Assembly (NCBI GenBank): GCA_025594325.1
Contig: JANHCV010000005.1
Span: 806,001 to 870,000, forward strand
Direction of reading: 5' to 3'
Length of the DNA: 64,000 bases
DNA from: Blastocladiella emersonii ATCC 22665
Lineage: Eukaryota > Fungi > Blastocladiomycota
A program made the translations under genes and the position numbers. Shown piece by piece: positions 9,081-55,866 of this stretch (its first letter is position 1; each line of letters begins with the position of its first letter). The notes below the pieces were generated by a model. That model saw only the letters and a program-made list of their open reading frames with translations, was not told the origin of the DNA and searched no databases.

Positions 9081-10073
9081 ATGATGACCAGCACCTACAA
9101 TGACAACAATCCCGCCAAGCGCCCGGTCACTGGCGCCTTCGCGCAACCGTCCATCGCAGAGACGCCAGCTCGCGCCATTCCGGGACCTGTCGGGGGCTCC
9201 TTCTCGCCCGTCGCTTCCTGCGCGGACGTCGAGGCGTGGGCTCGCGCGAACTTCCCAGTCGCGCCCGACAAGATCAAGCAGCTGTACCTGTCCTGGGAGT
9301 CGTTGCCGTGGACTGAAGCAGGTGGTTTCAAGCTCTCCTTCCCGAGCTACCTGGCGACGCTCGGCGATATCGCTGGGTACCACACGGCACTCGAGCAGGT
9401 CGCCATCTCCGACCCCACCGTGACCGCGGTCCGCGAGTCCATCATGCAGTGGGCGAATCTCTCCGCTCCCGGTGGCGCGAGCAACAAGTTCAACTCGATT
9501 CACGGCAACGTCGAGGTCACGTACTTCGAGTACCACGCCCTCGTCGCTGCGCTTTCCCTCGATCAGCCAACCATCAACCTGCTGCTCGAAAACGAGGTGT
9601 TCGGCGTCTCGCATGCTCGTCTCAACGAGCTGACACTTGGCTTGCAGCTGCAGCGGCAGCTCGTTGACTCATGGAGCAACTCGGACCTCGCGCCGTGGGA
9701 CATGGCCAACGCCATCGAGTGGTTCGATACCGCGTACGGCATCCACCTCGATTCCACGCTCTACCCAAGCTTCGCCGGCGCGCTCGCCACGAGACCAGCA
9801 CTCGCGGACCGGTTCCTCTTGCTCTTCAACTGGTTCGATCGTCCCGCGCTCAAGAGCGGGAGCGCCAGGCCCGCCGAAGTGGCGTGTGGGCTGCACCACA
9901 CGCTGTGCGCCTTCGCGCGAGCGGAGCTCCCCGCGCCGATCCAGCATTGCGTCAACGCTGGCGTCGTCACCAAGGAGCACTTGTTGATTCTTATTTCCGA
10001 ACTGCCAAAAGCGTCGCGACTTTTGGCGAGCTTCTTGGCGATGCTGGAGGCGATGCCTCGGAGTACCGAGTGA
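9081..10073 (+). CDS. Unknown family, copy A (lacks the F-box-like N-terminus)
   Basis: 330-aa ORF sharing VTYFEYHALVAA..LD..T..LLL.N..FGV, APWD and F....RF.LL..WFD motifs with the three downstream copies. Confidence 0.75.
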   Translation: MMTSTYNDNNPAKRPVTGAFAQPSIAETPARAIPGPVGGSFSPVASCADVEAWARANFPVAPDKIKQLYLSWESLPWTEAGGFKLSFPSYLATLGDIAGYHTALEQVAISDPTVTAVRESIMQWANLSAPGGASNKFNSIHGNVEVTYFEYHALVAALSLDQPTINLLLENEVFGVSHARLNELTLGLQLQRQLVDSWSNSDLAPWDMANAIEWFDTAYGIHLDSTLYPSFAGALATRPALADRFLLLFNWFDRPALKSGSARPAEVACGLHHTLCAFARAELPAPIQHCVNAGVVTKEHLLILISELPKASRLLASFLAMLEAMPRSTE

Positions 10074-10332
10074 GATAACGTAGTGCCCTTGTACATAAAT
10101 GCACATTCTTGCCCGTTTGAAACTATTGGGCGGTGAAACAAGTGCACGATGATCGGGGAAGTGTGGAGACGCGTCGCGCCACACACGTGGTCTTGGCGAA
10201 ACGGAGCCGCGTGAGTGACGCGGACGCGATGCGCTTTCGTGTTCCCCTGATCCCACGGTCCAAGCAGCCCGCTTACTGTTCTGGTTCGCCTTTCTCCGCT
10301 CAAAAGTGCACACCGCCCCGCGCTGGAACTCT

Positions 10333-11460
10333 ATGCAGAAGTCAGCCCAGCCCATGGAATCGCTTTCACTGTCGCCAAAACTCCTCGAGCGTGTCGCGCT
10401 TCTCGCGCTCCCGCGTCGCGACATCGCGGTGTCATCCAAGGCCTTTGCGACAGCTCTCGCGTCGCCGGCTTGCACTGCGACATGGATTCGCCGCGCCTTT
10501 TCTCGCTGCCACTCTGTCAAGTACATTGAGGGCATCGCGCTCTTCTTCAACCTGTGGGTCGACTTTCTCCACACGCGCTTTTCGCCCTCGCGGCTCCAGC
10601 ACTACGGCCACCACCCGTTCACGGCGCCCGTCATCGACCTACTGTACAAGGTGTGGGCCCCGCTGCGCGAATGCGACATGCGGTTCACCTTTCCCATCTA
10701 CTTTCTCGTGAACGGAGACCGTACGACATTCGAAAACGGACTCGAAGCGCTCGTCAAGCATGATTCGATTGCGATCGCGTGCAGTGAGCCGGTCAGTATC
10801 TGGAGCGGCCTGGTCTACCTCGGCGACAACATGGAGCACTACAAGCTCGCCAAGGCCGGGCTCGACGTGACCTTCTTCGAGTTTCTCGCGCTCGTCGCCG
10901 CTTGCTCGCTCGACCGCACGACGCTCAATACGCTACTCGACGACGACCGGTTCGGCGTGACTCCCGCCCGAATGTACGAGATCAGCATGGACGTGCAGGC
11001 GCAGGGCCGCCTCGCCGAGGCGTGGCGCGACTCAGACGCGGCGCCGTGGGACCTCGTCGACACGCTCGAGTGGTTCGAGGCCGAGTACTACGTCGCACTC
11101 GACCGCGAGCGGTTTCCGACGCTCGCCGGGGCGCTCGCGCCCAAGCACAACCAGGCGGCGCGCTTCTTCATGCTTCTCGAACACTTTGATGTGCCCGCGA
11201 TGGACAAGTCGAGGAAGGAGGCCATGGCCAAGAGTGTCACCCAAGCCCTGTGCAACTATGCGCGCGAGAACCAGCTCGCTCCTATCGAAGCATGCAGCAA
11301 GCTCGGGCTGATCCACAAGTCCTCGTGGCCCGCCATCCTTGACGCCGCGTCGCCGAAGGCTTGTCAAGCGCTTGAGATGATGCGTGAGTGTTCAAGTGTG
11401 CCGTGCGCTTCGGGTCCAACCAAGACGTCAACCGGAACCAAGGGGAAGTTGGCTCTGTAA
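10333..11460 (+). CDS. Unknown family, copy B, with F-box-like N-terminus
   Basis: Intact ORF. N-terminus LSPKLLERVALLALPRRDIAVSSKAF...ATWI; colinear with copies C and D. Confidence 0.75.
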   Translation: MQKSAQPMESLSLSPKLLERVALLALPRRDIAVSSKAFATALASPACTATWIRRAFSRCHSVKYIEGIALFFNLWVDFLHTRFSPSRLQHYGHHPFTAPVIDLLYKVWAPLRECDMRFTFPIYFLVNGDRTTFENGLEALVKHDSIAIACSEPVSIWSGLVYLGDNMEHYKLAKAGLDVTFFEFLALVAACSLDRTTLNTLLDDDRFGVTPARMYEISMDVQAQGRLAEAWRDSDAAPWDLVDTLEWFEAEYYVALDRERFPTLAGALAPKHNQAARFFMLLEHFDVPAMDKSRKEAMAKSVTQALCNYARENQLAPIEACSKLGLIHKSSWPAILDAASPKACQALEMMRECSSVPCASGPTKTSTGTKGKLAL

Positions 11461-11522
11461 TGGTTGAGCTAATTCGGCTATTTGACCACTCAAAATTGCT
11501 CCCACACGGCGCAAGCGCCCTG

Positions 11523-11586
11523 CGTGGCGGGCATTAGCCCTTGATTGAAGACCAAACGCAAAGCGTTTAGGTAGCTCAAGCACAAT
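11523..11586 (+). repeat. Dispersed 64-bp element, homologous to the Helentron-like right end at 53043-53109
   Basis: Manual alignment: 46 of 56 positions identical over 11531-11586, plus a shared CGTGGCGG upstream; hairpin retained. Confidence 0.8.
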
Positions 11587-11824
11587 CATTGTAAATGCCA
11601 TCGTTTCTGCGGGCAATAATCCCTTCCTCGAAGGGACGCATGTGGTGAAGCGGAGACGCGCCGCGCCACCCATGTGATGCTCGCATACCTTGAGGCGCGA
11701 GCATGCAGCGTGCCCGACGCACACGCATGCACACAAGAAAGCACTCGCCAAAAGTGCCGGTCCGCCGCTGTTCTCAAAAGCGTGTTCAAACTGGCTCTCC
11801 TCCTCCTGCAGCACAAGCTATATC

Positions 11825-12934
11825 ATGTCGCAGCCAATGGAATCCTCGTTTACGCTGGACCTGCTTGAGCAAGTTGTGCTCCTCGCGCATCCCAACTGCA
11901 AAGTTGCTGCAGCGTTGTCGGCTTTTACGACCGCTGTGAGGTCCCCGCCCTGCGCTGCTATGTGGATTCGCGGGGCATTCTCTCGCTTCCAGTCGTTCAT
12001 CAACATCACTGCACCCTCTCGCAGCCTCAATGCGTGGGTCGAGTTCATCCATTCGCGATTCTCGCCCACTACCGTGTCGCGAATCGAAGCGAATGTCAGC
12101 AACCATTCGTTCATGCCAGCCGCCCTCAACAGGCTGTACAAGCACTGGGCTCAACTGCGGGGGACCGATATCTGGTTCGTCCTCCCCATCCACTTTATTG
12201 TCAGCGGTGACTATGTAACGTTCTGCAGCACTCTTGACTCGCTCGTCAAGCACGACCCGACCGCAGTTGCATGTCGCGAGACGTTCGTTTCGTGGGCCAA
12301 TCTAACGTACTTTGCCGGCAGCATGCAGCCCTACATGAACGCTCAGGCCGGACTTGACGTTACCTATTTCGAGATTCTCGCCTTCGTGGCCGCCGCATCG
12401 CTCAACCGCGTGACCCTTGACACCTTGCTCAACAACGAACGATATGGCGGGTCCAGGTCAAATGTACGAGATGTGCGTCGACGGCCAGGCCCAGAGGCAC
12501 CTTGCCGAGTCGTGGTCCAACTCGGCTTCGGCTCCTTGGGACCTCGTTGACACACTTGGATGGTTTGAAGCTGAGTGTTACGTCTCGCTCGACCGCGACC
12601 GCTTTCCTACGCTCGCTGGCGCGATGGCGTACAAGGGTGACCATGCGGCACGCTTCATTATGCTTCTCGACTGGCTTGACTTGCACGAGATGAGCTCCGC
12701 GAACAAGAGGTGACGACCAAGAGCCTCACCGACGCCCTGTCCAACTACGCGCGCAGCGGCCAGATCCCACCGATCGAAAAATGCAACCAACTCCGACTTA
12801 TCCACCACACCGCCTGGCCGGATATCCTCAAGGAAGCGTTGCCGAGTGTGATGGACAGCCTCCAGGCGATGCGTGAATGGGCGAACGGATCAAGCTTGAT
12901 TGCTCCAGCAAAGCCAGTGTCCGAGGAAAGTTGA
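11825..12934 (+). pseudogene. Unknown family, copy C (two frameshifts)
   Basis: Homology to copy B runs across three ORFs (11690.., 12417.., 12710..), with frameshifts near 12450 and 12708. Pseudogene or assembly error. Confidence 0.72.
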
Positions 12935-13236
12935 TGGGTGCATGCGCTGCAGCGTTTCGTGCCGTGTCCCTCGCACGCGTATCACAGCCGATATGTCTTT
13001 TGCCCTTGTCGATTTTCAATTTCAAATAGTTGTTGGTTGATCACGACGCGCTCATGTCAGGGAGATTGTGAACAGTAAGCCTCGCTAAGCTTGCCAATTG
13101 AACAGGAGGGTGTGCAGCTTACTGTGAGATTGAGCGTTGACAAACAGTGAAAATGTGAACAGCTTTCACTTAAAATGTTCGTACAGCGCGGAAACTTCAC
13201 TTGCTCTCTCTCTTCGCTGGCATCATCTCCAACATC

Positions 13237-15250
13237 ATGTATCTCCCCCTCGAAATCCTCGAACGCGTCACACAGTTGTCGGCTCCGCGAAGCTTCATCC
13301 CGGCCTCGTCAAGTACCTTCAGGGTCTCCGCCAAAACCACGTCATGCGTCGTCAGCTGGCTCGTACGCGCTTCAATGGAGTCAGCAGCGGCTCGGATCAC
13401 GACCACACCGAGCTCCCGGCGCTATAGCCTCTGTTCATCCTACCTCGGCGGTCCAGCGGCATGGACCACGTTTCTCCACAGTTACTTCATGGTCGATTAC
13501 GTCCGTCGGCACGAGCACCCATTTACGCAGCCCGTCGTTCAGAAGCTGTACCTGATTTGGGCGCGCAATAACACGAAGCGCGCGGCAACGCTCATGTTCC
13601 CCCACAAAATCTCGCCAGAGTACAACAACATCTACTCCACGCCCAAGTTCGTGGTCGCCTTTGGGGACATGGCCATGTACCGCATCACTTTACTGTTGAT
13701 GACCCAGTTGTGTCCCGGAGCGGCTACTGTCGTCTCGGACATCACCACTTGGTCAAAGCTTGGCCAACTCGACGGCCACCACGGCCAAGTTGCGCGGTTT
13801 AACATCGCGCTCAACGTGAGCGCCACGTACTTCGAGTACCACGCTCTCGCCGCGACCATGGCCCTCGATCATGAAACTCTCAAGCTGCTTCTGGGCAACC
13901 CCGCGTTCGGCGTCACTTCTACTCGCGTTTCGGAGCTTACGCAGCATCACATGGCGCAGGAGATGCTCGCCGCGTCTTGGAAGGCAAGCACGCTTGCGCC
14001 GTGGGACTTTTCTGCCTCACTTGCCCACTTGAACTCCGGTTCCGCTGGCTCACCAAACCTTCCGCACCAGCTTACGTACCCGGCAGCAATCAAGTCCAGC
14101 TCGAGTGACGCTGCGCGCTTCCTGACCCTTCTCAACGAGTTTGACACTCCGACGCACTTTATTCCAGCGGCCCGTGATGCTTTCGCGAGAAGCATTGCAC
14201 ATAGCCTGACGGCGTTCGCGCACACCAACCGAATGGCGCCCATCTACCGGTGCCGCAACATGGACTTGATCGAGCTCAACGCGTGGCCGGAGCTGCTGCG
14301 GGAGGGCTTGCCGAATGCGCGGCAGGCGCTCGTTGCGCTCATCAGGATTGGGTTCCGATCAACGAACATCTCTCTATTGCAGAAAAGGGTACGACTCGTC
14401 GCTAGTCACATCCACCGACTACACTGCTGACTGTATCACTCGCAATTCTGTAGCGTTCGACAGAGCGTCCTGCTCCACACAGTCCGATCTGAAATCGCTG
14501 GTGCAAGCCTGCATCGCCCTTGGGCTTCCGCTCAAGTCATTGGTGACGCGCCTTCTATCCTCATCTCCACGGTCGCACATGTTCGTGACCCTCGTGGACT
14601 TGATTGACGACGTGCTGCCGTTCGACACGCTTCTCGAGCGTCTTGCAGAAGCGGTAACCAAGGCGCCGGCAAGTGTCACCCCCGTTGCCGTTGTTCGCAT
14701 CTTGGCGTATCCGCACGGAAAAGGACGCAGCCTGCGCGAATGCCTTGCCTTTTTCGCGGCCGATGGTCGAGAGCTTCAGCGCTCAACGATCTTCGGTAAG
14801 CTCCTGGAGGCGACCGCATCGGACCCGCTCGTGCCAGGTTTCGCGGCTACGACGTTCGCCTTCATGGATGCGTTTGGAGGCCTCCTCAACAAGCGCAACA
14901 GCAAGTTGGCTTCGACGCTTCGTCAAGTCTATTCAGCAAGTTTGCTGGTTGAGATGGATGACGATCAAGGCGAGCTGTCCGATCGCATTCACGCGGCGCT
15001 CAAGACTCTCTTCGTTCGCCTCGTTACGTACGACCCGCACTTCGTGGCGTTGCGCGTGATCCCGTGGACTATGAACGTTCCTGCATGGGTGTGGCGCCTC
15101 TACAACTCGCACACGGAGGCACTAACCTCCAGACTCTCTGTTCCCGGGGCCGAGTACGCGTTGCGCAAGAAGCGGAGCCTCCGTGACGACGTTGGCGCAC
15201 ATGCGATTCTTCGCGCGTACCCCAGGCTCGATGAAACGGAAGAACAGTGA
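13237..15250 (+). CDS. Unknown family, copy D, plus a probable second exon encoding a helical extension (about 14454-15250)
   Basis: MYLPLEILERVTQL F-box-like start and family motifs. Strong donor GTACGA at 14389, branch GCTGAC at 14426, TAG acceptor at 14453; this splice is out of frame (see findings). Confidence 0.65.
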
Positions 15251-16171
15251 TTCCTCGACGAATTCGATAAAAAATGGTTTTCGAGCATCGATCCTCTTCG
15301 CTAAAGCTGCTCAACGAAAAGGGAGCCTCACCGATCGACGCGCTGCGCCACATCACATGTTCAGTGGCGCAGCGCGGAAGTCGCTTCGCATGGCTGGACT
15401 TGCTCTTTTGTGGGGACGCCGGTCCCGGCACCCAACTATCGAGGCCAAGTCCGTCGGGCCGTTTCAGACGATCCTCAAGCCCGTCGTTCGGCCAAGGCCG
15501 CCCTTAACGAGGAGCGCTGCAGGTGAGCGGTCCCGCCTCGTCTTGCTCGAGCACGGCGATAGAAGTCACACGCGCTTCGAGTTTCTTGCGGCAGAAAACC
15601 ACACGAAAGTGTGTTTGGTCGACTGTTGCGTGTTGGTCGAGATGGTGTTGCGCAGCTCGCGAGAAGCGAGCTCAAAGTTCTTGGTCAGACCGCGTCTTGC
15701 CGCAGTATACGGCCTCGGCCATGGGACATCCACGCGGCCGGCTGGCGTAGAACATCGCAGCGCAGCGCAGCGCGCACGCTCCTCGTATCCACGGACAAGC
15801 ATGGAGCATCACTCCATGGCGCGGTGCGAGAGCTCGTGGTCCGACCGCACGCCCTGACGAGGATGTCCCATGAACGGGAAGAACACGGCGCCGCTAGAGT
15901 GGCTAGACTCACACTGATCCGGGTTCGACGAGAGGCCGCGTCAGAAGAAGGACCGAAGCGAGCGTTCGTTCAGGTCTGCCCGGGCTTCGCGGAGGAGGCT
16001 CAGGGCACGTAGTGACGTCACGCCAGTGTTACGTGGGCTCTATTTGCGTCACTTGCGCGAGTGCGGGGAGAGAGAGAGGAGGGATCGCGACGGCGCCGAG
16101 AATAGCGCCACAAGGCCGGCGGAGAGAGACGGGAGACGCGTCGCGGTGTGGCGCGTGTGGCGTGCGCGTCA

Positions 16172-16221
16172 CGTTCCGCCGACCCGCCGCGCGTTCCGCC
16201 GACCCGCCGCGCGTTCCGCCG
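16172..16221 (+). repeat. 20-bp tandem repeat x2.5 (CGTTCCGCCGACCCGCCGCG) upstream of the GATA gene
   Basis: Seen directly in the sequence. Confidence 0.85.
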
Positions 16222-17088
16222 CCGTTCGCTCGTGGCGCGCCGCCCCGATGCCGGAGCGACCTCGACCGCCCCTCTCCTCCTCTCCGCCGAGGCCCCGCAC
16301 TCCCTGCATCGCGCCGACGGACCCGTCTCCCACGCCGTGCCCCTGCCACGACGCGAGCGAGCGCCGCATCGCCGACCCGCCGCCGCCGCGCGCCGCCCTC
16401 CCCCGCGTCCCCGATCGCGCCATCGCGTCGCCGGACCGAGAACGGCCGCGCCTCCTCGCGCGCCTTGTGACTGCGATCGCCGCGAACTGCGCCACGCCGT
16501 GTCTCGCCGGCCGCGCCCGCTGCCCGCTGCCCACGTCGCATCTCCCCGCGTCCTGCACCACTCGCACGCAGCGACAACCACGGCCCGGTCCATCGTTCGC
16601 TGTCCCTGCGAGATTTCGGCATTTCCCGGCTTCACCTGCTGCTACCCGCTGTGCCTTCCGACGCGGACGCGTCAAGGGAAAGCGTTTGCCCGAGCCGCCC
16701 CGGTCCCCACCAACGCCGACCCGTCCTACGCTTCGCGCGTCACGTCGCGTCGCCATCCTCACCGTGGCCCGTGCTGCTTGCTCCGCCGCCGCCGCGTCCC
16801 CAGGTCGCGCTCTTGCCGCCCACCCTCGAGTTCGGCCGAGCGGCCCGTCCCGCTGCCGTTCGATTTCGCCGTGTCGTTCCGAGCTGTCGGCCGGTGACTC
16901 GCCCTTCACCTCCGCTGCTCTGACATCCGTCCCGACTCGCTCTCCCTCTTCCGTTCCTTCTGCTCCGTTGTTTTCCGTCCTGGGGCCGACTTATACCCTC
17001 CCTCCACCCGCCCCTCATCGGCTCTCCTCCCCGCCGACCCACCGACCCACCCACTCGACGCGCCGCGCCACCACCACCCGCCGTCACC

Positions 17089-19319
17089 ATGGCGTTTCCC
17101 TTCTTCTTCGGCAGCCGCAACGACCGTAAGAAGCCCACCGGCAATGCCGCCCAGCCCGCCCCCGCGGCGCCCGGCGCGCCCGCCGCCCCCGAGTACTACG
17201 CCGAGCCGCTGACGCTGCCCGGGATCGTCATGCCCGGCACTGCGCAGCAGCCGTCGCACCAGCAGCAGCAGCAGCTCCCGCCGCCCGTGGGCAACGGCCA
17301 CGCGCGGTTCCCGTCCTCGTCGTCGGGCCTGCACGGCCAGCCGCCCCAGCAGCAGCAGCCGCTCTACGCCCAGGACTATTCCATCACGGGCGTCCCGCTG
17401 CACCACACGCACCAGCAGCAACAGCAGCAACACGTCTACCACCATCAGCAGCAGCAGCAGCAGCAGCACCAGTTCCCGCCACCCTCCGCGTCGCCCGGCA
17501 CCTCGCTCGGCTTCTCGGGCTACTCGCACCCGTACCAGCAGCAGCCACCGTCGCAGCAGCAGTCGCAGTACACGTACGGCGGCGGTAACAACAACAACAG
17601 CAGCGCGTCAACGTCGGGCTACTCGACGTCCAACACCACCCCGAACGCCTACCCGATCCCCGGGCCCTACAACAACAACGCGGGCTCGACCGTCCCGACC
17701 ACGCCCGTCGAGAGCTCGTACGGCGGCGGCCTCTCGGGCTCGTACCACGCGCCCACCACCCCGACCACGCCCGGCAGCCTCAGCACCGCCCTAGGCAACA
17801 GCCTCCACGTCTCGGCCAACCCGAACGCGCAGCCGGCGCCCGGCGTCGCGGCATCCGACGCACACAGCGTCCGGTCCCGCGCGTCCGATACCTGGAGCGT
17901 CCGCTCGCGCCGCAGCAGTCTCGCAGCGTCGATTGGCGGGATTGACGACATCACCGAGGACACGATTGACGAGGTGCGCGCGCGCTCTCGCTGCGCTGGC
18001 ATCGCGCGGCTCGCGGTTCGCTCACTGCCCTCGCTCGCCTCGTGTAGATCATCAACGCGGCCAACGAGATCGCGCAGATCGCCGCCTCGTGCAAACCCTC
18101 GTCGCCCGCGTTTGTCCAGCTGCAGCAGCAGCGCCAGGCGTCCGCCGCCTCCGCTGCGGGTGGCCCGTCGTCGTCGCTGCCCGATGGCTCAGCAACACCG
18201 GGCGGCGGCGGTCCGCCACCCACCTCGGTCGCCGACCTCATCACCACGCCCACCGGGTCCAAACTCGTCGTCCAGATGACGCGCCTCACCATGGACCTGT
18301 TCGCCACGGTCCGCCGCGTCCGCGAGGAGGTCAGCATCGCGTGCCACTGGGACGACGACAGCACCGAGCTCGACGAGATGGAGGAGATCCGGCGTCGGCG
18401 GTACCTCGGGTCCGCGTCCGCGTCGGCCGCGCGCAAGGCGGGGGTACGTTTATGCTGTTGCTGCTGATCGTGTGGGAGTTCCGGTGGCTGACACTGCATC
18501 CGTGTGTAGACGAAGCCTCGGTCCGGAAAGGGTGCCGCGCGGCCCGACCAAAAGTGTACCAGCTGTGGGACCTCGTCGACGCCCGAGTGGCGGCGCGGGC
18601 CCGAAGGTCGCGGGACCCTGTGCAACGTACGCTATTAATTGATCGAATTCCGCGATCGAGACCCATCAACTGACCTCTCGCTCTCATGTCTAGGCGTGTG
18701 GTTTGCACTACTCGAAAATGCAAAAGGCCAAGAAGAAGGCCGCCGCTACGACGCCCACAGGCGGCACCACGAGCGAGCCCATGGCGACCGACACCGCCGC
18801 CGCCGCTCCAACGGCACCGCCACGCCCTTCCTCGACCTCCAACTCCGTCAACGGCCCCGCGCCTACGACTGCTCAGGCACTCGCACTGGCACCGGCACCG
18901 GGTCCCGCGCCAGGAACCGAGCAGTACGCGCAGGCCCCGCCGCCGCCACCACCACCCGCAGCGCACGGCCACAACGACCAGCAGCCGCAGCACTACCAGC
19001 AACCGTACTATCAGCCGCCGCCGCCGCCGCAGCAGCAGCAGCCGTACCACCCGCTCCAGCACCCAGCGCACGACGGGACCGCGGCCGGGATCTCGACCGC
19101 GGCCGCGTCGACGGCCTCCTTCTCGTCGTCGGGGCCCGGGTTCGTCGTCATGCCCTCGGGGGTCCCGCAGCAGCACCAGCACTCACACCCGCAGCACCAT
19201 CAGCAGCAACAGCAGCCGCACCAGCTCCCGCCCGTCTCGGCTGTCCTGTCGATCCCCACATCCGAACCCATGGGAGGCGGCGGGAACCAGCAACAGCAGC
19301 AGCAGCACCAGTACTTCAT

Positions 19320-19357
<38 letters not shown>

Positions 19358-19467
19358 CGCACTACAGTACCGCCTCGATGATGATCCCGGCCAACTCGTC
19401 GCCACATCAGGGATACCTCGGCCAGTACCACAATAGCGGAGGCGGTGGGAGTGGTGGGCATGGATGA
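17089..19467 (+). CDS. GATA-type zinc-finger transcription factor (C-X2-C-X18-C-X2-C) with polyQ regions, multi-exon
   Basis: [24 protein letters not shown][14 protein letters not shown]; Q/P/H-rich flanks; introns with GT..AG. Confidence 0.9.
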
Positions 19468-27143: not shown

Positions 27144-27175
<32 letters not shown>

Positions 27176-34779: not shown

Positions 34780-34863
34780 GGCGATAGTTTGAATACATTT
34801 TTGGGACTCCCGCGCTCCCTTGCTAGCTAGTCTTCCACATTCATTGCGAGTGAAGCGGTTCCA

Positions 34864-42873: not shown

Positions 42874-43121
42874 TGCCCTTTGTAAAGTGAATATGATGCA
42901 GACGACTTGTTTTCGATCCAACTCTGAGCGGACCACTACCGAGATGAGGTTGAAGAAGCGGGTGGACGCGTCGTACCTCTGGAACAAATCGCGAGGCAGG
43001 GACGCGTCGGGAAATCACGCCATCGTCCACGTGCTCGGTCATCGAGGCGGGCTTCGGTGACGACCAAGCCGCGCGTCTGAGCGACCTCCCAGATGTGTCT
43101 TCCCCTCGCGAAGTGCTACCC

Positions 43122-44973
43122 ATGGACTTGATGCAATCTGATGAAAATGCCACGGATAGGCCAGGCCTCGCTCGGCTCCCGACGGAATTGACGAGCGCGG
43201 TGCTCCAGCTTGCAGAACCGCGCTCCTCGATTGCACTTGCTTCGGCTGTCCTCCACACTTCAGCCTTGGATCAGCCCACTCATCTTGCTTGGATTATCTC
43301 TGTTGCTCAGCGCCTCGCTAAATGGCCCCACCGTGTCTGGTATATGCCCGGACCAGGTCCCGCTGGCAAGCCGTACCTGGGTGACGCCCTGACTTGCCTC
43401 ATCCACGTCGAGCACCACTCGCCGGAACGGGTGAACACTTTAATCGGCGAAGACCCGTTCCAGTATGCTTCGGCTCTCAAACAGATTATCCTTCCACTCG
43501 TTACACACATGTGTCGCCGCATCCGACCGACCGACCTTGAGCGAGACCATTATCGCCAAGCGCTTAAAGACTCGTTTTCCGAGCAGGCTGGCTCGGTGAT
43601 CAAGAGTCCCGTTGCCACGATCACCAGGCTCCTTGTCGCAGGCGTCGTGTTCGGTTGGACCGATTTCGTGCGCCAAGCCCTTGATTTCGTGGTCGCAAAT
43701 TGTCGTTCGCTCCTTGACGCCCGCTTGCACATTGCAGACTGGGCGCGCTGCGTCCAGGGATCCAGATGTACGATGGTCGACTTTGATTGGTTTTATCGTG
43801 TGTCTGCGCTACCGCTGCGAATCGTTGACGCGCTTGCGTACTACTCCGTTGTTGCGTGGCGGGTTCCCAGCTTCCAGCTGCTTCTTGGCGAGCCTCGGTA
43901 CACAGTGGACCAGGCGGCCCTTGTCGCCCTACTTTGTGCCAAAAAAATCATCCGAGTTTGCACTTTAAGCAAACGTGTACTCTGGTGGCCAAGGGAGCGC
44001 TTACGACGCCGCCGCCTTCGAGATTTTTGCGTGGATCTTTGAGCATGGTCCTCACATGCCTTCAAGTATGTGGAAGGCTTACGTCCACGCCGCCGTGTAC
44101 CTCGGTCACCGCATCTTTATCCCGCTTGATGACGAGGAAGAGGAACTCGAATTAGACTCGGAGGACGAGGATGAAGATCTTGAAGCGGAAGCGGCTAACC
44201 GCGAGCAAGGCGAACAATGGCAGTTGGATTTCCTTGCCTCGAAGGACGTGTCGACCGTTCTTGACTTGCTTTTTGGCTCCCCCTCCCCGAGCGACGAGGA
44301 CGAGCGCGCTGTTTGGCTTGCGACGCTCAATATTTCCGAGTTTCTCGCCGCTGCTCTGCAGCATCCACAGGGATGGTTTTCAAGCCAACTGAAACGGGAA
44401 AACGCTGTGCATCTCATTCTCCGTGCTGCGATTCGTCTCATTTTCCGGCCCGACACTGTCTCGCCAGTACCCGGTCAGTTCCGCCTTGTTCGCAATCATC
44501 CTGCCAATCACTGCCGTGACTGCTCTCTCGAGTTCCAGCAACTCTGGCGCAATCTGGTGGAACTGCTTTCCGAGCTGTGCAATTCCGAGCAGCTCCAATC
44601 CCTCCTTCCGCCCTTCCACGACATGTGGTCGCGGCTGTCCAAGCTGATTGAGAATCGAGGCACCGAGTGCACCAACGAGCGATTGTCGTGCAATCCATTG
44701 GCGTCCACCCAGCTTGCTGTTCGCGTCCTTCTTGCGAGTGACGCCAAGCGAGCGCTTGACCTGCTGCGCGTCGAGGTCGACTCTGGCAAAGTCTCGCCCA
44801 ACGCTCTGCGCTTGATTCTCGACGGCGCGCTGGACGGTATCGCGACGCCCGCGATGCTCTCCGATCTCTTCCGCAAGCTCTTTGCTGATTCCAACGCTGA
44901 TCCGTCACGCGCTGACCGCGAGCTCGTCTGTATCGCGCCCAAGGTCGCCTCGCTGATCAAACGCGTGTCGTAA
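43122..44973 (+). pseudogene. F-box-like family, long type, copy 1 (A7 frameshift at 43941, TAA at 43966, internal deletion)
   Basis: LARLPTELTSAVLQLAEPR N-terminus; homologous to copies 2 and 3 across two ORFs. Confidence 0.75.
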
Positions 44974-45538: not shown

Positions 45539-47891
45539 ATGCAAACTCATGAAATGGACCCTCGTGACAACCTTTTCGCTCGGCTGCCCGTTGAACTCGT
45601 AAGCGCGACGCTTCGGCTTGCGAAGCCGCGCGTCGTCATCGCGGTCGCCTCAGCATCGCTTCACGCTTTAGCAATTGATGATCCTGTAATTCTCGCTTGG
45701 GCCATCGCGGTTGCAAACCGGATTGCTGTGGCGCCTGGTCTCAAAACAGTAGGCAAGATGTTGGATCACTTTATTGGCACAGCCTCGAGCTTCGCTGGAT
45801 CGCGCTCATCTTCATATTCGACGATCGATCCTTACCGACCAAACAAAGTTCTCGTTGTTCTCGCGACCTACCTGTGTCGCCGCATCCGACTCAGTGACAT
45901 GGAGCCGGAAAAGGTCTCGAAAAGCGTGAGCGACTTTCGTTACGAGCGCGGCGGCTCGATTCTGAAAAGCCCGCTCGTGTGTCTTGCTCAGCTCATTGTT
46001 GAATTTGTCGTCCGTGCACGGACGGATGCCCTCCGCTGCACCCTTGACACAGTCCTCTCCACTTGCCCGCAGCTCATCAATGCTTCCATCGGCTTTTTCG
46101 AGTGGTCCCTGCTCATGTGCGATTGTCGGATTGCCGAGCTCGACGAAGTCTTGCATGACGAGGACATGGACGATGCAGATCACATCCAGTTGCGTTTTGT
46201 CGATGCTCTAGCGTACTTTTCCGTTGTCGCGTGGCAGCCTTCGACGTTTCGCCGGCTTCTCGATGATTCCCGATGCGCCATCAACACGGCCTCACTCGCC
46301 GCTACCCTCTCCACTCGCGCTCCGATGACTGCCGCGCTTATCTCAGCCCCATCCCAAGCGAGCACAACCAACGTAGCAGACATTTTAACGTGGATCTTTG
46401 GTCACTGCCCGGATTTTTCGGAAGAGGCGCGCACTGCGTACGTGCACACCGCCGTCCATGTGGGTCACGAAGCATATATGCCGCTGCTGGCACAGTTTCC
46501 CGACCAAGTCGTTCCGGGGCTTCCTTTCCGCGAGGACCTTCAAGATACACGTCTGCGCCTGTGGTGGTTCTCTGAGCTTAATCACGGATACGGCTACAGC
46601 GATAGCGACATTGTGAATGATGAAAACGACAACAGTGGCGATCACGTTGATGGTGGCCCCACGGCCTATCAACTTGGCAATATTGTCGCTCGCTGGTACG
46701 ACCATTCGCTCTCTATCGACGATCTTTTGCTTTTGGATCGACATGGACTCGTCGCAGCGAAGTGGTGGAAGTTTCTGATTGGCACGGCCATCGCTCAGGG
46801 CCACTTTGACTTCACATGCCGTGTTTGTGAGCGGTGCACACCAGTCGAATGGAGCAATCTCCTTCTCGAGGGTACGACTGCGCCTGCTAACCTGGATTAA
46901 GCGGCCATGACGACTCAATTCACTGGTATCACATGTAGCATACGTTGTGGGCAACGGCGCTTGGGCGCGGGCACGGCCGCGGCATGATGCTGTTTCTCGG
47001 GCCGTGATTCGATTTGCGCTTGTGCCTAGTGTCCATCGAGGCGGAGGCGGGGACAATCCGCTGAGTCTTTCCGACTTTGCCGAGGCCTATTGCAAGGATT
47101 GGCAATTCACGCCTTCGTTCTTGCGCTGGCAGCTCGACTTTCTGTGTTCGTCCGACGTTCACGCTCTCATAGTCGAGTTGCTCGACTCGCCCGTTTCGCA
47201 CTCCGACGACGAACGCGTTATCTGGTCCGCCTTAGCAGATCTAATGTGGCTTCTTGCCGCAGTTTCAACTGCGTCCGGTTATCAGTCCACCAAGTTTTCC
47301 GGATTCTCCAATTTTGTTCAAGAGGTTGACGCCAAACAGCTTTTTCTCCGTGCTGCAATCCGGGCGCTCTTCAAGCCTGATGGTGTCGAGCAATCGCCAA
47401 AACGACTCCGCTACTTTTCCGCGCAGAACGAACAAGTGTGTCGACGCTGTCCGCTCGTGGCTCAGCAGATTTGGCGCGATCTTGTCGACCAGCTGCTCGA
47501 ACTCTGCAGCCCAGATCAGCTTGCGTCGCTCATCCCACCCTTCGACGACGTCTGGGCTCGTATTTGTAAACCCGTCGATGTTTGGGGCAACAGCTGCTCG
47601 CAGGCGTGCAACCCGCTGTATTCGTCCCGACTCGCTGTCCGCGTCCTGCTTTCGAGCGACCCTCAGCCCATGATCGATGCGCTGATGAACGAGGCGGGCT
47701 CGGGCAGTCTTTTGATCACTGCCTTGACTTTGCTGCCCGACGGCGCGTTGGACGGCCTCCTGGCACCCGAGAAGCTGGCCGATCTCGCGCTCAAGTTCAA
47801 GACGGTCTGCAACGCCGATTCGGCGTGGGTTGCCCGTGAACTTGCGCGGGCTGCGCCGAAGATGTCAAAGCTGGCCCAGCTCGATCTATAA
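45539..47891 (+). CDS. F-box-like family, long type, copy 2; apparently intact, two exons (intron 46872-46938)
   Basis: FARLPVELVSATLRLAKPR N-terminus; the GTACGA...TGTAG intron joins ORFs 45539..46900 and 46947..47891 in frame (G|CA TAC GTT GTG). Confidence 0.8.
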
Positions 47892-48404
47892 CGGCTCGCT
47901 GGTGCCCGTTTCCTGTCGATTTGTACTCGTTGCAATATATTTCTATTATTTGGTGCCAAAGCTGCTCCAACTCGCGGTGTGCAACCTGAGAGTCGCGTTG
48001 CGACGACAACAACAACGTGGACGGCGCCGTAAGATTCAACCGCGGCAACGCGAGATGCGCGAACACACGGGCGTGCGAATTGAGGTTTGGTTCTACGCGT
48101 TATCAAGGCGCCCGTGGTCTGCCCGGCCTACTCAATCGTATCGAGGGCTAAAGCCCTCTATTTTTGCCTAGCCGACGCGCGCCCTTGGGATCTGACGTGT
48201 CTCCCTGGCCCACGTGCGTCACGCACGTGTTTCACGCGTTTCATGGGATATAACCAACGCGTCTGAGTCTCCCACCACCAAGCTCTCTCGCCTGCAGTCA
48301 ATCGTGATAGTAACAAAAAAAAAATCAAGTATTGTGAATGAGAGGACAGCAACAACAAAGGAGGGAAACGGAGGAAGTGGAGAGAGGAACACGACGTCGT
48401 TCAG

Positions 48405-49344
48405 TTATCTGCGGCCGCCGCGGCGGCGGCGGCGGCGCTTGGGGACCGCCTCAAACCCGTCCTCGTTGTTGTCACCGCCCTCCTCGGCGGCCATGGCGGC
48501 CGTGCGCTTGGGCGCGTCAGCGGGAACGGCCGTGGCCGACGCGACCTCGCGATCCGTTGTGCCCGCCTCCTCGATTATGGGCGCCGCGAGCGCGACTGTC
48601 GCACTTGAAGTCGACGACGACGACGACGACGACAACGACGACGACGCGGCCGACGACGACGACGCGGCCAACGAGCCAACCGGCGGCCCGGCGGGCTGCA
48701 CGGCGGTTGAGAGCGTTGAGGTTGACGACGACGAGGCGACGGTCGCGTCAACCCGCAAAACGGCGGGCTGCACAGCGGTCGAGGACAACGACAACGCGTT
48801 GGTGATCTGCGGTGCGGCGGTCTGCACAGCGGCCGTCAAGGAGGACAACAAGGCGACGCTGTCGTTGAGCTTGCGCAGGATCCCTGCCATGCGCGTCGTG
48901 AACTTGGGGTCCGAGTCGCCCTCCTTGTCAGACACGTCAAACACGAACCGCGGCTGGCGCACGGGCGAGGACAGCGTCAGCCCTGACAGCGGCGTGGCTG
49001 GGGTCGGCGGGATGGACTCCTGCGGGCAGGCGCCGTACGGGTTGCTGCGGCCCGCGGGACCGCCGTGATGGTGCGCTGGCGGCGGCAGAACGGCCGCCGA
49101 CGATGAGCCCGCGGGACCACTGTGATGGTGATGGTGGGCCGGCGGCGGGACGGCGGGCGCCAATGACAAAGAGGGGGTTGACGGCGGGTTGAAGGACGCG
49201 GCCATCGACGGCTGCTGCGGCGGGACGGCGGGCGTTGACAAAGAGGCAGGCGCCGACGACGAGGAAGAGGGGGTGGAGGGCGGGTTGAAGTGCGAGGCCG
49301 GCGGGGGCATGGCAAGCGCCGTGGGCGCCAAAGGCAGCGGCGCC
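48405..49344 (-). other. 5'-truncated low-complexity ORF (P/S/A/H-rich, basic C-terminus PKRRRRRRGGRR) inside the element, antisense to Rep-Hel
   Basis: Open frame 48405..49544 whose low-complexity part ends at the junction with the Rep-Hel remnant at about 49345; has internal direct repeats. Confidence 0.5.
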
Positions 49345-52300
49345 GTGGAGATTCCCAAGACCATGGCCGCGCTGTTCCTGCACACAGCGACCGCCGGGAT
49401 CTTCTCGCACAAGTTCGCGCCGCTGCTACTGTACCAGGCGATGTGGTGGCTCGACCTCACGGGCGTCACTGCTGACGAGGTGACCGAGCAGGGTGTCGAG
49501 TGCATCGCGAGCACCATCAGCGTCAACAGCAAGCCAATGCTCAACGTCGCGCTGCACGACTACGTGTTCCGCCCGCCCGAGCTCGAGAACCTGTCGTGGT
49601 ACGAGCTTATCTCCTCGTGGTCGCGCGTCAACATGCCGCCGAAAATGCGCGAGGTCCTCGTCAACGGCGGGCGCGTCGTGCCCGCGCAAGCAGAACTTGG
49701 ACCAGCTGCCGACATGCCGCCCGGCACGAGGCTGTCCTTCATGGCCGACCACCCGCTGGCCAAGACGCACGACCTGCTCAAGAACAACGTCAACGTCATG
49801 CCCAAGATCGCCGGGCCGCACATGCCCGACCTGCGCAAGTTTGGCGACGTGCCCAGGTCCAAGGAAAAAGTACTTGCGCATGGCGCTGCTGCTGCTCCGC
49901 CATTTCCGCGTCTCGAGTGACAATCTCGACGAGAACGACTCGGCGATCGCCAAGTTCAAGGCGTTCAAGGAGGGCCTCCAACCCGGCGACCTGGCGCTCA
50001 ACCACCTCGAGTACGCCCAGGGGTACTACTTCAGTCTCGACGGTGCGCGCGCGTACCGTGAGTGCCGCGATCGCGAGAACGCCGAGCTCTCGGCCAGGCT
50101 GTCGCAGGAGGAGCGCGGCGAGCTGTTCGTTCCATCTGGCGACAGCGACCGCAACGCGTCAAGCTCGCGCGCTAAGGCGACCGCCACCGAGGACCCGACT
50201 GCAGAATGGACCATGTTCACTCAGTCGCAGCAGGACATTGCCCTCGATCCGGTCATTGCCGACAACGCCATGAACGGTGCTGGCGCCGAGGTCGCGCCCA
50301 CCGTTAGCGAGCAGAACTTCAAGCTGGTAATCGACGCGCTGGTCCCTGGTGCTGCTGCAGACCTGGTCGACCACCTGCGCCTCCCTCCAGTGCGCCCGTT
50401 CGACGTCAAGGCGGCCGTCCCACCGACGACGCTCAAGGAGCCCATCTCGGCGAACACGCTGAAAAGGTTCCTGGCGCAGCACCGCAGCGCCGCATCTGCA
50501 GCGCCGGCCGCTGCTGGAACAGCTCCTGTCGCTCCGCAAGGCGGGCAGTCGCCGCTCGTCGGCGCGTCAACCACGTCAGACGCTGCTGCTGAGTCGCAGA
50601 TCAGCGTCGATCCCGAAAACGTCATTGAGGACATTCCAGAAGCTCCAGAAGTACCCGCCGCCGACTTTTGGCGCGGTACCTTCGCCGCGAGATCAACGGA
50701 ATCTGCAGCGAAGCGCAAGCGGTTCCTCGTCATGAAGGCTGCGGACTCGCTCAACAACTTTGACCACGCGACTCGCGGCAAGGAGTGGACGGAGGCGGAG
50801 CAGCGCACCAAGCGCACGCCCGCGTAGGCGAGCCCCGCGCAGGTTTCGCTCAAGTTCAACCTGACCAAGGAGCAGCACCGCGCGTTCGTGCTCTTCCTCA
50901 TGCCGCTCATCGCCACGTTCATCGGCGGCGACAGCGGTGTCGCCGAGGCCGCCGCGTCATCGGATCCAGGCGCCCTCGCGTCGGGCCGCGACCGGCCAAA
51001 CGCACCAGCTCTCGCCTCGCTTCCGCCCATGAGCAAGGATCGCTCGCCGATCATTCTCACAGGCTCGGGCGGCACGGGCAAGTCGCGCGTCATTGACGCG
51101 ATCCGGTAGTTTCTCGCGTCCTGGAACCGCGAAAAGTGCATGATGGTCATGGCCATGACGGGCATCGCTGCCGCCAACATTGGCGGTACCACCATCCACG
51201 CCGCGTTCCAGCTCTCGCTCAAGGGGGAGAGTCTCAGCCCCGACATCAAGCGCATCCGCACCGACTCTGCTGTCGCCAGCGCGTGGCAAGGACGTCACGC
51301 CGTGATCATCGACGAGTTCTCCATGTGCGACGCGCAGCTGCTCGGACGGGTCGACGCGAGCCTTCGCGACCTGCGTCGGTGCGACGAGCCGTTTGGCGGC
51401 TGCATCGTCATGCTCGCCGGCGACCATTTGCAGCTTCCACCAGTGAACGGCACGGCGCTGTTCCAGCTACCCGAGGTGCTCGACGATGCGCCAGACTCGT
51501 TCTTCAAGCGGCTGCTCGCGTACGACACCACTGGCGCGAAAAAAAAGAGCACTCGGGCCAGCTCGCGTACTGGCGCGCGCGACGTGTCGTTCGACTCGTG
51601 CGCAGCAACCGGTTCGTCAACGACCCATCATGGGGCAGGTGTCTCGACGCGTTCCGCCTCGACAAGGCCCCCGACGAGCTGCGCCGCCTGCTCGACTCGC
51701 GCACGGCCGCTCGCCTGCGCCAGCTGAGCGACGACCAGGGCAACAACGCGCTCGAGAAGATCCTCCAGACGCGCGAGCTCACAGTCATTGCGCCCGACAA
51801 CTACACGCGTCACACCTTCAACCTGCTGTACACGCGGCTCGCCGCTGCGGACCCAGAACGCGTCGTGTTTCAGATCAAGGCCAGCATCACGCGCAAGAAG
51901 GAGCGAAACGGCGCAACCGTCCGCCTCCCGACTGGCGAAAGGGACCTGTTCCGTCTCGCCGAGGAGCCCCACTCGATCACTCGTTTGCCAACCATCCTCG
52001 AGGTCTTTGTCGGCATGGAAGTGCGCGTCAAGGTCAACCAGTGCGTCGAGAAGGGGTGCGCGAATGGCGCTATCGGCGTCGTGCACCACATCGACTGGTT
52101 TCCGGGCACGACGTTTACCGAGGCCGGCTCGCGCATGTAGTGCCCATCGCGGGAGCCACATACTGTGTGGATCAACCTGCCCGACGCGCCACCTGGCCCT
52201 CAGTTTCCTGGCATGCCGGCCGATTGGCCAGACACGGTCATCCCGCTCGCCATGCAATCGGACGACTTTCTCTACAAGGAGGGCGGTATGACGTCGCGCG

Positions 52301-52902
52301 AGCGAACCGAACCCAAGAAACCCGAGTCCAGCGCACTGTGCGCCAAGATGGTCAAGAACTTCGATACTCACAAGCAGTACAAGGACCACGAAAAGGTCAA
52401 GATCAAGCAGTTCCCAATCGTGCCCGCCTTTGCGATGACGGTGCACGGGGTCCAAGGCGTGACCAAGAACGCCATCATCTTGACGGATCCGTGCCCAGCC
52501 GGCTCGTCTGGATCGATCAACGGGTCGTCGCTGTACGTTGCGCTCTCGCGGCTCCGCGAGAGCGCGTTTCTGTGGGTTCTCCATCCGATCCCGGACAGCG
52601 TGTACGACGCCATGGTCCCTGATCCGCGGGCCGTGGCCGAAGACTTGCGACTCCAGGCGCTAGACGTGTTGACCAAGGGCGCGTTCGCTCACGGACAAAT
52701 CGTTGCGCAAAACCACCCCCGAGTCGCGGAGCTCTTTTGCCACGCGATGCAAGAGCACCGCCAGATCAAGAGCGACAAGGGGGCGAAGCAGAAGGCGCGC
52801 GACCAAGAGTACTCAAGGCGGTATCGCGAGCGTAGGCGCGAGCAGAAGCGCGCTCCAGAATTGCATGAGCAGCGGCGGAGCAAGAGGCTTCGCGAGATTT
52901 AA
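49345..52902 (+). pseudogene. Helitron-type Rep-Hel remnant: post-Rep region plus Pif1 (SF1B) helicase; HUH domain missing
   Basis: EIPKTMAALFL..SHKF, DHPLAKTH, LTKEQHRAF, GSGGTGKS, AMTGIAAANIGGTTIH, IIDEFSM, GDHLQLPPV, NGAIG, QFPIVPAFAMTVHGVQG, YVALSR. In-frame TAGs at 50825, 51107 and 52138; frameshifts near 49865 and 51540. Confidence 0.88.
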
Positions 52903-53295
52903 TGTAAGATTCCATTTGTAGTGTTATAAAGTATACTTAGCTGCTTTCAATTATTTTGGTGTGTGATGGGAACAGAGATGCGACTCCATAATGACGCGCG
53001 ACTGTCAGCGGTACAAAACCTCCCGCGTGTGCCGTGCTCCAACGTGGCGGAGGGCTTTAGCCCTCGATTGAAGACCAGACGCGAAGAGTCTAGGTGGTTC
53101 AAGTAAAATTTGACCATTACGTTTGCAAAACGTCGACTGCACAGAGAGGGACGCGTCGCGAAATCACGCCACATCCACGTGCACATGATGAGCCGAGACA
53201 GCCCCGGCTTCGGCGGCGGCCTGTGGCGGCGTGATCGATCGCAGCTGAGAGACCTCCCCCTCCCAGATGTGTCTTCCCCTCGCGAAGTGCTACCC

Positions 53296-55866
53296 ATGGA
53301 CTTGATGCAATCTGATGAAAATGCCATGGATAGGCCAGGCCTCGCTCGGCTCCCGGTGGAATTGATGAGCATGGTTCTCCAGCTTGTGGAGCCGCGCTCA
53401 ATGATTGGAACCGCTTCAGCTTTCCTCTACACTTCCGTCTTGGATCAGCCTGGTATATGCCCGGACCGAGTCCTGCAAGCAAGCGGTACCTGGGCGATGC
53501 GCTGACTCGGCTCATCCACGTCCATCATCACTGGCCGGAAGGAAAGCGCACCCCGAGCACGGAGCTGCCGTTTGACTATACTCCTGCTCTCCGGCACATC
53601 ATCTTCCCTCTCGCTACGCACATGTGTCGCCGCACCCGATCAAGCGACCTGGAACCAGAGACTTTTGGCCGAGCCCTGGAAGACTCTTTCCTAGAGCAGA
53701 CTAGTTCGGTGCTCTTGAGTCCCGCCGCCGCGCGAGCCCGGCTCCTTGTCGCTGGTGTTTGCTTCGGATGGACCGATTTTCTGCGCCAAGCCCTCAATTT
53801 CGTGGATGCAAACTGTCGCCCGCTCCTCGACACTCGCTTGGATCTTGCAGATTGGCCGCTTTGTGTACAGGAATCCAGATTCACATCGGCCAATTTTGAT
53901 CAGCTCACAGACGTACCTGTACTCCCGTTGCGATTCGTCGACGCGCTCGCCTACTACTCTGTTGTTGCGTGGCGGGTTCCAAGCTTCCAATTGATGCTCC
54001 CCCAATCTCGGTACGGAGTTGATCCAGCGGCTTTAACGACCTTGCTTTGCAACATTTGACCAACGGGGTTCGCACTTCAAGAAACCGTGTACTCGGGTGG
54101 CCAAGGCAACGCGAACGAGGCTATCGAGATCTTCGTGTGGATTTTCGAGCACAGCTCTTCAATGCCTGTGTCGGTTCGCGAAGCCTATGTACACACGGCC
54201 GTCTCACTGGGCCACCGTTTATTCATCCCGCTGCTCAAGCAACTCCCGAACATTGTCAAGGGGGGGGGGCACTTCGGTACCGCCCAGGCATCATGGACTT
54301 TGTCATCGAGGGCTGGTGGTTGCCTGATCCTGCTTCACTTGGCGAGGACAGGGAGTCCTACTATCACCTTGGTGACAGCATCACCCGCTGGTACAACGAG
54401 TCCAGCTTTTCTGTGGACGACCTTGCGTTTTTGGATCAGCACGGCTTGATTGCATCCAAGTGGTGGTATTATTTGATTGGTATTGCAATCACGCGACGCG
54501 ACTTTGACCTTATTGGCCGCGTCTTTGACCAACACACGCTCCAGCCGCGGCAGAAAATGCTCCTTGCAGGTACTGGACTCTGCTATTCCACCTCGGTGCT
54601 GGAATCTTAGCTGACGTACGATTCCACAGCATATAGCGAGGGCCTCTGTTGAGGCAGGGATCACGGCTCAACGATGTGTATTCGAAGTCCCCTCCTCGCT
54701 AGCGGAGTCCCGCTGGGTTATGTACAGCGGCGCCGGCGGACGCGTTGGTGCGCGCCGGGGGCGGTGAGAGACGCGACACGCGTCCTGGCTCGGGGCCTCG
54801 TGCGGCCGCGTGAGGGACGCGTGATCACGCGTCTGTCTCACGCGGGCTGCGAGACAGGCCAGCTGAGGTCAGGACCGGACCCCGAATCCTAACAGCCTCG
54901 ACGAGTATGGGATGTTAATCTACGGCGTTTCTAAGCCCGTACTCCGATTTGCGCTTGTACTCAGTCGTCACCGCGGCGGCGCCAGTGATACTCAGCTTAC
55001 TTTTGGTAGCTTTGCCAAGGTTTGCAGCTCGGACGAGAGCTATTCGTATGATGAAGATGGCGACAATGAAGCAAGCGAGGATGGTGACGAGCCGGACGTG
55101 CTCTCGCAGTGGGATTTTCTCGTCTCAACGGATGTTCGTGCTGTGCTTGCCGAGGTCCTTGACTGTACCGCCTTGAGCGACGCAGATGAACGTAGCACCT
55201 GGTTGACAGCTCTCAGCGTGACCAAGGTTGTTGCCGCCGCCGCTCGAGGGGACTCTGGTGAGTTGGACTGGATCGAGCGCAGCGCGAAAAATAACGACGC
55301 CGCTCACGTCCTTCTTCGCGCCTATATTCGAGCTCTTTTCCCACCCGTCGCTCATTCGACGGCCGAGGGTCATTCTTGCATCAAACGCGACGATCTGGCA
55401 AGCCATTGCAGCGATTGTCCGTTCGAGGGCCAGCAGCTCTGGCGCAGTCTCTTGGAGCTGCTGCTGTGCACCCCAGACAATCTCGAGTCGCTTCTTCCAC
55501 CTTTAAGTGACGTCTGGTCGCGCCTATCAAGACTGCTCCGCGATGATGCTACCGAGTGCACCAACGACCAATCGCCATGCGACCAGTTGGCATCCGTCCA
55601 GCTTGCTGTTCGCGTCCTTATTACGAGTGACGCCGAGCGACTGATCGACATGCTTCGATGCGAGGTCGGCCTTGGCCAGGTTTCGCTTGACGCCTTGCGT
55701 TTGATTCCCGACGGCGCGCTGGACGATCTCGTGGCACCGGAAACGCTATCCGACCTCTTCATCAAGATTTTCGCTGATTCCGACGTTGATCCTGCTCGCG
55801 CTGACCGGGAACTTGCGCGGATTGCGCCAAAAAAAGGCGGCCGAGATGATTAAACGCGTGAAGTAA
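53296..55866 (+). pseudogene. F-box-like family, long type, copy 3 (61-nt deletion, TGA at 54057, G10 and A7 frameshifts, solo-LTR insertion; intron 54570-54629)
   Basis: Colinear with copy 2, including a phase-1 intron at the same position. Confidence 0.8.
54647..54894. mobile_element. Solo LTR, 248 bp, TGTT...AACA termini, 5-bp TSD GCCTC
   Basis: TSD at 54642-54646 and 54895-54899; removing the insertion restores the reading frame (AYSEGL|DEYGMLIYGVSK). Confidence 0.85.

Follow-up and report, generated by a model that had tools for sequence, protein, structure and literature searches.

Do the two gene arrays that lie in a 64,000-nucleotide stretch of the Blastocladiella emersonii ATCC 22665 genome (contig C17:806001-870000, hereafter the window) belong to a single gene family, and does this family encode F-box proteins? 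The original prediction, made from the sequence alone, described four tandem copies at 9.1-15.3 kb (array 1, family I, copies A to D) and three at 43.1-55.9 kb (array 2, family II, copies 1 to 3), and it read them as rapidly evolving adaptors of SCF (Skp1-cullin-F-box) ubiquitin ligases. All seven copies were located at these positions, and they make up only a small part of a superfamily that numbers at least 150 loci. Its genes are split into two exons, and their products are soluble, all-helical proteins of approximately 650-800 residues. In these proteins a conserved head precedes a fast-diverging alpha-solenoid encoded by exon 1; beyond a phase-1 intron, exon 2 adds a helical C-terminal domain, which is not the same in the two branches. 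New copies arise by tandem duplication, and existing ones decay through frameshifts, deletions and transposon insertions.

Two branches of one superfamily

Within each array the copies match each other clearly by BLASTP, with expectation values (E) of 1e-14 to 1e-83 (in array 1, A-B 3.6e-48 and B-D 1.4e-43; in array 2, copy 1-copy 3 5.8e-83 and copy 1-copy 2 8.6e-40). Between the arrays only the N-termini match, and weakly (D against copy 1, E 0.007). The relation between both arrays was evaluated with profiles: alignment A4, which contains the family-I exon 1 of copies B, A and D plus one paralogue from contig C1, was compared by hhalign with alignment A2, which contains 19 sequences of the family-II exon 1. 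The two profiles aligned with a probability of 94.8% and E 5.5e-8 over 216 collinear columns, from the head through to a central motif, and a control comparison with an unrelated alignment gave E 0.65. With the heads removed, the bodies aligned over 93 columns ending at the central motif (E 2.2e-4). The central motif that had been proposed as common to both arrays was paired by hhalign exactly as in the original prediction. Given this significant profile-profile similarity, the proposal of one family with two sub-types stands, and the arrays are, judged from their profiles, two homologous and diverged branches of one superfamily.

The phase-1 intron is kept in both branches, with the form G|GTAYG...YAG|C. 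The intron of copy 2, with its G|GTAYG and YAG|C borders, recurs in 11 other family-II loci, and in the family-I paralogue of contig C1 a 55-nt phase-1 intron (GTACGC...CTAAC...CGTAG) lies between the two open reading frames (ORFs). The idea that the whole gene is common to both branches was dropped, since the exon-2 domains are not detectably related (E 0.06, probability 0.9%). It should be noted that the exons were searched one by one, and not as joined spliced proteins.

Size, range and maintenance of the superfamily

The genome searched comprises 32.65 Mb in 21 contigs, the number of contigs of the published assembly of this strain (PMC9730499). Exon 1 of copy 2 gave 116 matches in it, exon 2 of the same copy 107, and family I 16. 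Furthermore, a profile of the 72 positions of the head found at least 150 loci, all with E 9e-9 or better; this count is a lower bound, with 150 of the 527 first-look candidates scored.

When the family-II profile was run exhaustively with HMMER against 1.84 billion representative proteins, it returned 15 matches (E 3e-36 to 8e-4), all of them hypothetical proteins of B. emersonii ATCC 22665 (H9P43_007187, H9P43_005077, H9P43_009425, H9P43_007671 and 11 others, GenBank KAI91...), and no viral or other relative from outside B. emersonii. As far as this search reaches, the superfamily is found only in B. emersonii. The 15 annotated proteins are true relatives, the sole ones known, and several of them span both exons; however, they are distant, unnamed and unstudied members, and the family-II copies of the window have no annotated counterpart. 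That the close members of family II are not annotated follows from the best database match, which reached only 142 bits. In addition, a word-index protein search with exon 1 of copy 2 gave no match.

The tandem copies are 25-45% identical, and the bodies diverge to 25-35% identity. In seven paralogue pairs the ratio of nonsynonymous to synonymous substitution rates (dN/dS) was 0.27-0.40 at dS 0.6-2.0 (Nei-Gojobori), and in four of these pairs dS was unsaturated (0.63-1.04). With a dN/dS of about 0.3, the intact members are real genes under purifying selection, and the family as a whole is kept, though loosely.

Is the N-terminal module an F-box?

The head was analyzed in alignment A3, composed of 72-residue segments from 29 modules (the five window copies that keep the module and 24 paralogues from elsewhere). 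These modules align without gaps over some 50 residues; Leu-Pro, Leu-Ala and Pro are conserved in at least 90% of them and one Trp is invariant. The resulting consensus, LPxEL..VL.LA.PR..I.AAS...W, describes a module of about 50 residues with three helices. The six N-terminal strings quoted in the original prediction are all present, and the invariant Trp follows Pro-Arg by 22-23 residues, except in copy 3, where a 60-bp deletion removed this stretch.

Several observations point to an F-box. The 29 modules of A3 have an F-box-type start, with Leu-Pro-x-Glu-(Ile/Leu), the hydrophobic pattern of helix 1, a Pro loop and the N-terminal position. PF12937 is the sole Pfam family that matches more than one member, with sub-threshold matches in three of the 29 modules (best E 0.028) and in two of 10 annotated relatives (E 0.037 and 0.073, in register). 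Moreover, the top sequence match of the family-II profile in the PDB is the F-box of FBXW7 in its complex with Skp1 (E 0.19), with Leu-Pro placed on Leu-Pro.

Other results weigh against this reading. Pfam as a whole gave no match above its cut-offs in the window copies, the 19 family-II proteins and the 29 modules. No match to PF00646 or PF12937 over the cut-off was obtained in 10 window ORFs, 19 family-II proteins, the 29 modules or 10 annotated relatives, and the best sub-threshold F-box matches reach 13-14 bits, compared with a Pfam cut-off of 24.3. Because the matching sequences are homologous, these sub-threshold matches count as roughly one observation, with E near 0.03. The genome contains about 40 canonical F-box loci that score 25-61 bits, none of which belongs to the family, whose modules score at most about 16 bits, and only two of the 150 module loci overlap any PF12937 match at E up to 1. 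The position of the invariant Trp is also different: in canonical F-boxes the Trp of helix 3 comes about 25-28 (about 27) residues after Leu-Pro, whereas here it comes at a distance of 38 residues from the Leu of Leu-Pro (A3 columns 11 and 49), some 10 residues later. The AlphaFold2 (AF2) model of the isolated module predicts helices at 13-22, 27-40 and 43-59, the second one with 14 residues. This model, with a predicted local distance difference test score (pLDDT) of 77.6 and a predicted template modelling score of 0.40, gave no Foldseek match, and its VIA-align matches (best Z 4.4) included no F-box. Neither did the cross-family module profile find an F-box in the PDB. Apart from the FBXW7 match, the sequence search of the PDB with four profiles (A2, A3, A4 and A5, the last one built from the family-II exon 2) gave only chance-level matches. 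The claim that the N-termini are F-boxes is thus not established, since no Pfam cut-off was reached and no solved F-box was matched by the module model. We tentatively consider that the head might be an F-box, and we put this somewhat short of an even chance.

Two observations on the genome concern the same domain and its partner. Most fungi have one Skp1 gene. In B. emersonii, three loci carry a Skp1 C-terminal domain over the Pfam cut-off (C15:2012492-2012704, C1:792512-792658 and C1:3199651-3199794), which counts in favour of the F-box reading. A cluster of weak PF12937/PF00646 matches, which cover only model positions 1-30 with 15-19 bits, is located at C20:1073624-1341538 and may represent another expanded family with an F-box-like start.

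The solenoid body and the C-terminal domain

The AF2 model of exon 1 of copy 2 has a pLDDT of 85-96 over residues 100-345 and 375-445, and consists of stacked helix pairs with short strands between them. Foldseek searches with this model against the PDB and a viral library returned nothing at E below 0.001. With VIA-align, some 20 of the 50 best matches were ankyrin-repeat domains, but the scores (Z 5.0-7.6) were too low to be meaningful for helical repeats; these domains include those of TRPA1, RNase L, IkB-zeta, Notch, FEM1B, KANK3, DARPins and Legionella AnkB. The ESM language-model neighbours of exon 1 were all ankyrin clusters (0.93-0.94, a score of low recognition value), and in our own reading of the hhalign alignment the spacing of the central motif, AA........L..LL, is that of an ankyrin helix pair. 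Neither PF00023 nor PF12796 (ankyrin) matched any of 19 members at E up to 10, and hhalign self-comparison revealed no internal repeat of about 33 residues. The body is modelled as an alpha-solenoid, possibly a degenerate ankyrin one. The "novel helical recognition domain" that had been proposed is retained in part: the body is helical, variable and placed behind a small conserved head, but it is probably a degenerate ankyrin-like solenoid.

In the family-II exon 2 (e.g. 47430-47480), a Cys-x-x-Cys followed by Gln-Gln-x-Trp is conserved, also in the annotated relatives; in A5, Cys168 and Trp176 are invariant or nearly so. A kinship of exon 2 with ZYG11/ZER1 was considered and rejected, since the ESM neighbours score 0.80, which is chance level.

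The seven copies in the window

All copies lie on the forward (+) strand. In array 1, copy A (9081..10073) is an ORF of 330 amino acids that aligns to B only from approximately residue 104 of B; it has neither the N-terminal module nor a second exon, a correction to the original prediction. Copy B (10333..11460, counted from the first ATG) has an exon-1 ORF that is intact and contains the module LSPKLLERVALLALPR...W, but exon 2 is absent downstream. Copy C (11825..12934) is an exon-1-only pseudogene, split over three frame pieces (11690-12550, 12417-12713 and a tail to 12934) and also devoid of exon 2. Copy D has an exon 1 at 13237..14388, with the module LPLEILERVTQLSAPR...W, and a frame change near 14341, some 45 nt upstream of the donor, where the third frame reads DWVPINEHLSIAEKG, equivalent to MWVISSMHVTIAYHG of the paralogue. 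Its intron (14389..14453, 65 nt, donor GTACGA, acceptor CTGTAG) agrees in donor, acceptor and position with that of paralogue L004, and this frame change shifts its phase by one base relative to the upstream ORF. The ORF at 14315-15250 is 39% identical (E 2.7e-44) to the ORF that immediately follows the family-I paralogue of contig C1. Since it matches the second ORF of that paralogue, the segment 14454..15250 within it, which encodes the family-I type of C-terminal domain, is exon 2 of copy D. Array 1 therefore consists of three exon-1-only copies and one two-exon gene (D).

Phase-1 donor-like GT dinucleotides are present near the 3' ends of A, B and C (10063, 11384 and 12873; GTACCG, GTGAGT and GTGAAT), and they share the phase with the single acceptor at 14453, before the exon 14454-15250. 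These sites are at non-homologous positions and may have arisen by chance. As a lesser possibility, array 1 could in principle work as a cluster of alternative first exons spliced to 14454-15250.

Copy B is 100% identical to part of the GenBank protein H9P43_004948. This model of 629 amino acids is a chimeric annotation that fuses the tandem copies A and B: the segment 9081-9959 of A supplies residues 1-293 and is joined to 10441-11457 of B, which supplies the second half, and the false predicted intron between them (9960-10440) deletes the N-terminal module of copy B. The description of the family as unannotated is consequently valid for the family-II copies, but not for copies A and B.

The array-2 genes were found to be two-exon genes, which again corrects the original prediction. 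Copy 1 (43122..44973) has one frame change near 43944-44020 and has lost about 190 internal codons together with the intron, with an acidic stretch in their place. Copy 2 has an intact exon 1 (45539..46871), which encodes the N-terminal module (45554-45769) and the alpha-solenoid body, a 67-nt phase-1 intron (46872..46938, GTACGA...CTAAC...TGTAG) and an exon 2 (46939..47891) for the C-terminal helical domain with the conserved Cys-x-x-Cys...Trp. From its reading frames, copy 2 is the sole intact two-exon gene among the seven copies, and the only one that would be able to make a full protein. Copy 3 (53296..55853) is a pseudogene in which, apart from the 60-bp deletion already mentioned, at least two frame changes were found. 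A 258-bp dispersed repeat (54642-54899) is inserted at its intron position; full-length copies of this repeat, with 89-94% identity, are present on contigs C20, C4 and C16 (two on C16), a pattern that fits a solo LTR.

The 5' ends of copies 1 and 3 (43085-43276 and 53259-53450) are 88.5% identical over 192 bp and the rest of these genes 71-72%, which suggests a local gene conversion. Between copies 2 and 3, ORFs in several frames at 49493-52902 resemble a broken helicase-bearing mobile element. Both arrays are flanked by ordinary genes, which encode an S1/P1-type nuclease, a Na/H exchanger, a PDK1-like kinase, GRASP, eIF2B, a CDK-like kinase and nicastrin.

In total, six copies out of seven are damaged, by truncation, frameshift, deletion or interruption. 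As the assembly was built from HiFi reads (PMC9730499), most of these breaks are probably real. The strong divergence and the several pseudogenes that had been noticed at the outset are confirmed, and they fit birth-and-death evolution.

Proposed function and alternative explanations

The explanation that we propose is that the head docks to a common partner, most likely as a divergent F-box that would bind Skp1, and that the variable solenoid would bind the targets. The proteins would then be interchangeable substrate receptors of SCF-type ubiquitin ligases, like those of the nematode and plant F-box expansions. A common partner for the head is suggested because the module is near constant at the 150 or more loci while the bodies are only 25-35% identical. 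Taken as a whole, this combination of a divergent F-box head and a target-binding solenoid in SCF substrate receptors is one that we favour with reserve, and it may well prove wrong. In an alternative view the head is not an F-box; it would cap an ankyrin-like solenoid with three helices specific to this lineage, in proteins that work as scaffolds or binders outside SCF (in oligomerisation, localisation or target sequestration). We regard this as quite possible, though not as the outcome to be expected: every formal F-box test failed or gave no clear result, the invariant Trp is displaced, and in the whole-exon model the head (pLDDT 50-66) runs straight into the solenoid. Such a cap is harder to reconcile with the near-constant module and the common partner to which it points, with PF12937 as the only recurrent Pfam hint, in register, and with the FBXW7 F-box at the top of the PDB sequence matches.

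The other two explanations concern the origin and the present state of the arrays, and both seem improbable to us. The family could be of selfish or foreign origin, captured and amplified by mobile elements or derived from a giant virus (giant viruses have large F-box and ankyrin families), and could persist in transposon-rich islands of low GC content at third codon positions (GC3). The lower GC3 that had been noticed was confirmed: it is 0.60-0.67 in array 2 and 0.69-0.82 in array 1, compared with 0.87-0.95 in six neighbouring genes. The arrays lie beside the helicase-bearing element (ORFs at 49.5-52.9 kb), a dispersed repeat sits inside copy 3, most members are absent from the public annotation, and in the viral structure library it is F-box and ankyrin proteins of Pandoravirus that match best. 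Those matches, however, are non-significant (E 0.04-0.2), with template modelling scores of only 0.1-0.3. Pfam detected no transposase, reverse transcriptase or integrase domain in the window ORFs or in 19 family-II proteins, and the copies are old (30-40% identity) and tandem, not dispersed and near-identical as would be expected of transposable-element proteins. In addition, the spliceosomal intron is conserved, and the exhaustive sequence search found no viral or other relative, so that the viral or horizontal origin offered as an alternative in the original prediction is left without sequence support. Similarly, the window copies might be non-functional relics and the arrays without present function, as the six damaged copies and the low GC3 would suggest. 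It is difficult to extend this to copy 2, which is intact with its two exons, or to the family as a whole, which the dN/dS of the paralogue pairs elsewhere indicates to be maintained.

Comparison with known systems and implications

Lineage-specific expansions of F-box proteins (PF00646, PF12937) are known in Caenorhabditis and in plants. The B. emersonii proteins resemble F-box proteins in the N-terminal module of about 45-50 residues, its Leu-Pro-x-Glu-Leu start, and the hydrophobic pattern that runs through helix 1 and the Pro loop. As in the nematode and plant expansions, a variable and putatively protein-binding body is present, the copies number in the hundreds and form tandem arrays, and the family evolves by birth and death and contains many pseudogenes. 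They differ from F-box proteins in that they remain below the Pfam cut-offs, have a longer helix 2 and carry the Trp about 10 residues later, and neither the body nor the C-terminal domain matches any known F-box-associated domain. Legionella AnkB (5k34, Z 5.2) and the Pandoravirus F-box/ankyrin families, which are among the best though weak structural matches, likewise combine an F-box with ankyrin repeats, the arrangement that is putatively read here from the head and the solenoid; however, these matches are non-significant, and there is no sequence similarity, no ankyrin Pfam match and no 33-residue repeat. The cullin-2 substrate receptors FEM1 and ZYG11/ZER1 have helical repeats too, and the weak structural matches include FEM1B and FEM1C. 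In contrast to the B. emersonii family, those receptors dock by a C-terminal BC/VHL box and not by an N-terminal head, and all the scores are at chance level.

What is new here is that the two branches are linked and have an intron in common, together with the count of heads over the whole genome, the annotation error and the estimate of selection. Whatever the function of the family, the reference annotation of B. emersonii (10,031 genes, PMC9730499) lacks most of its at least 150 loci, and at least one annotated model (H9P43_004948) fuses two tandem copies; for these reasons, gene counts and orthology analyses of this fungus are biased. The module may define the largest gene family of B. emersonii, with 150 to about 500 loci compared with the 10,031 annotated genes, almost all of them unannotated, and its products might be fast-turnover SCF receptors for the surveillance of non-self, for example viruses, transposons or parasites; we advance this proposal as speculative and rather unlikely. 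Should the head prove to bind Skp1, an early-diverging fungus would have independently built a set of ubiquitin-ligase adaptors, hundreds strong and with its own body fold, that is absent even from the other Blastocladiomycota in databases, and F-box expansion as a form of innate surveillance would extend beyond animals and plants.

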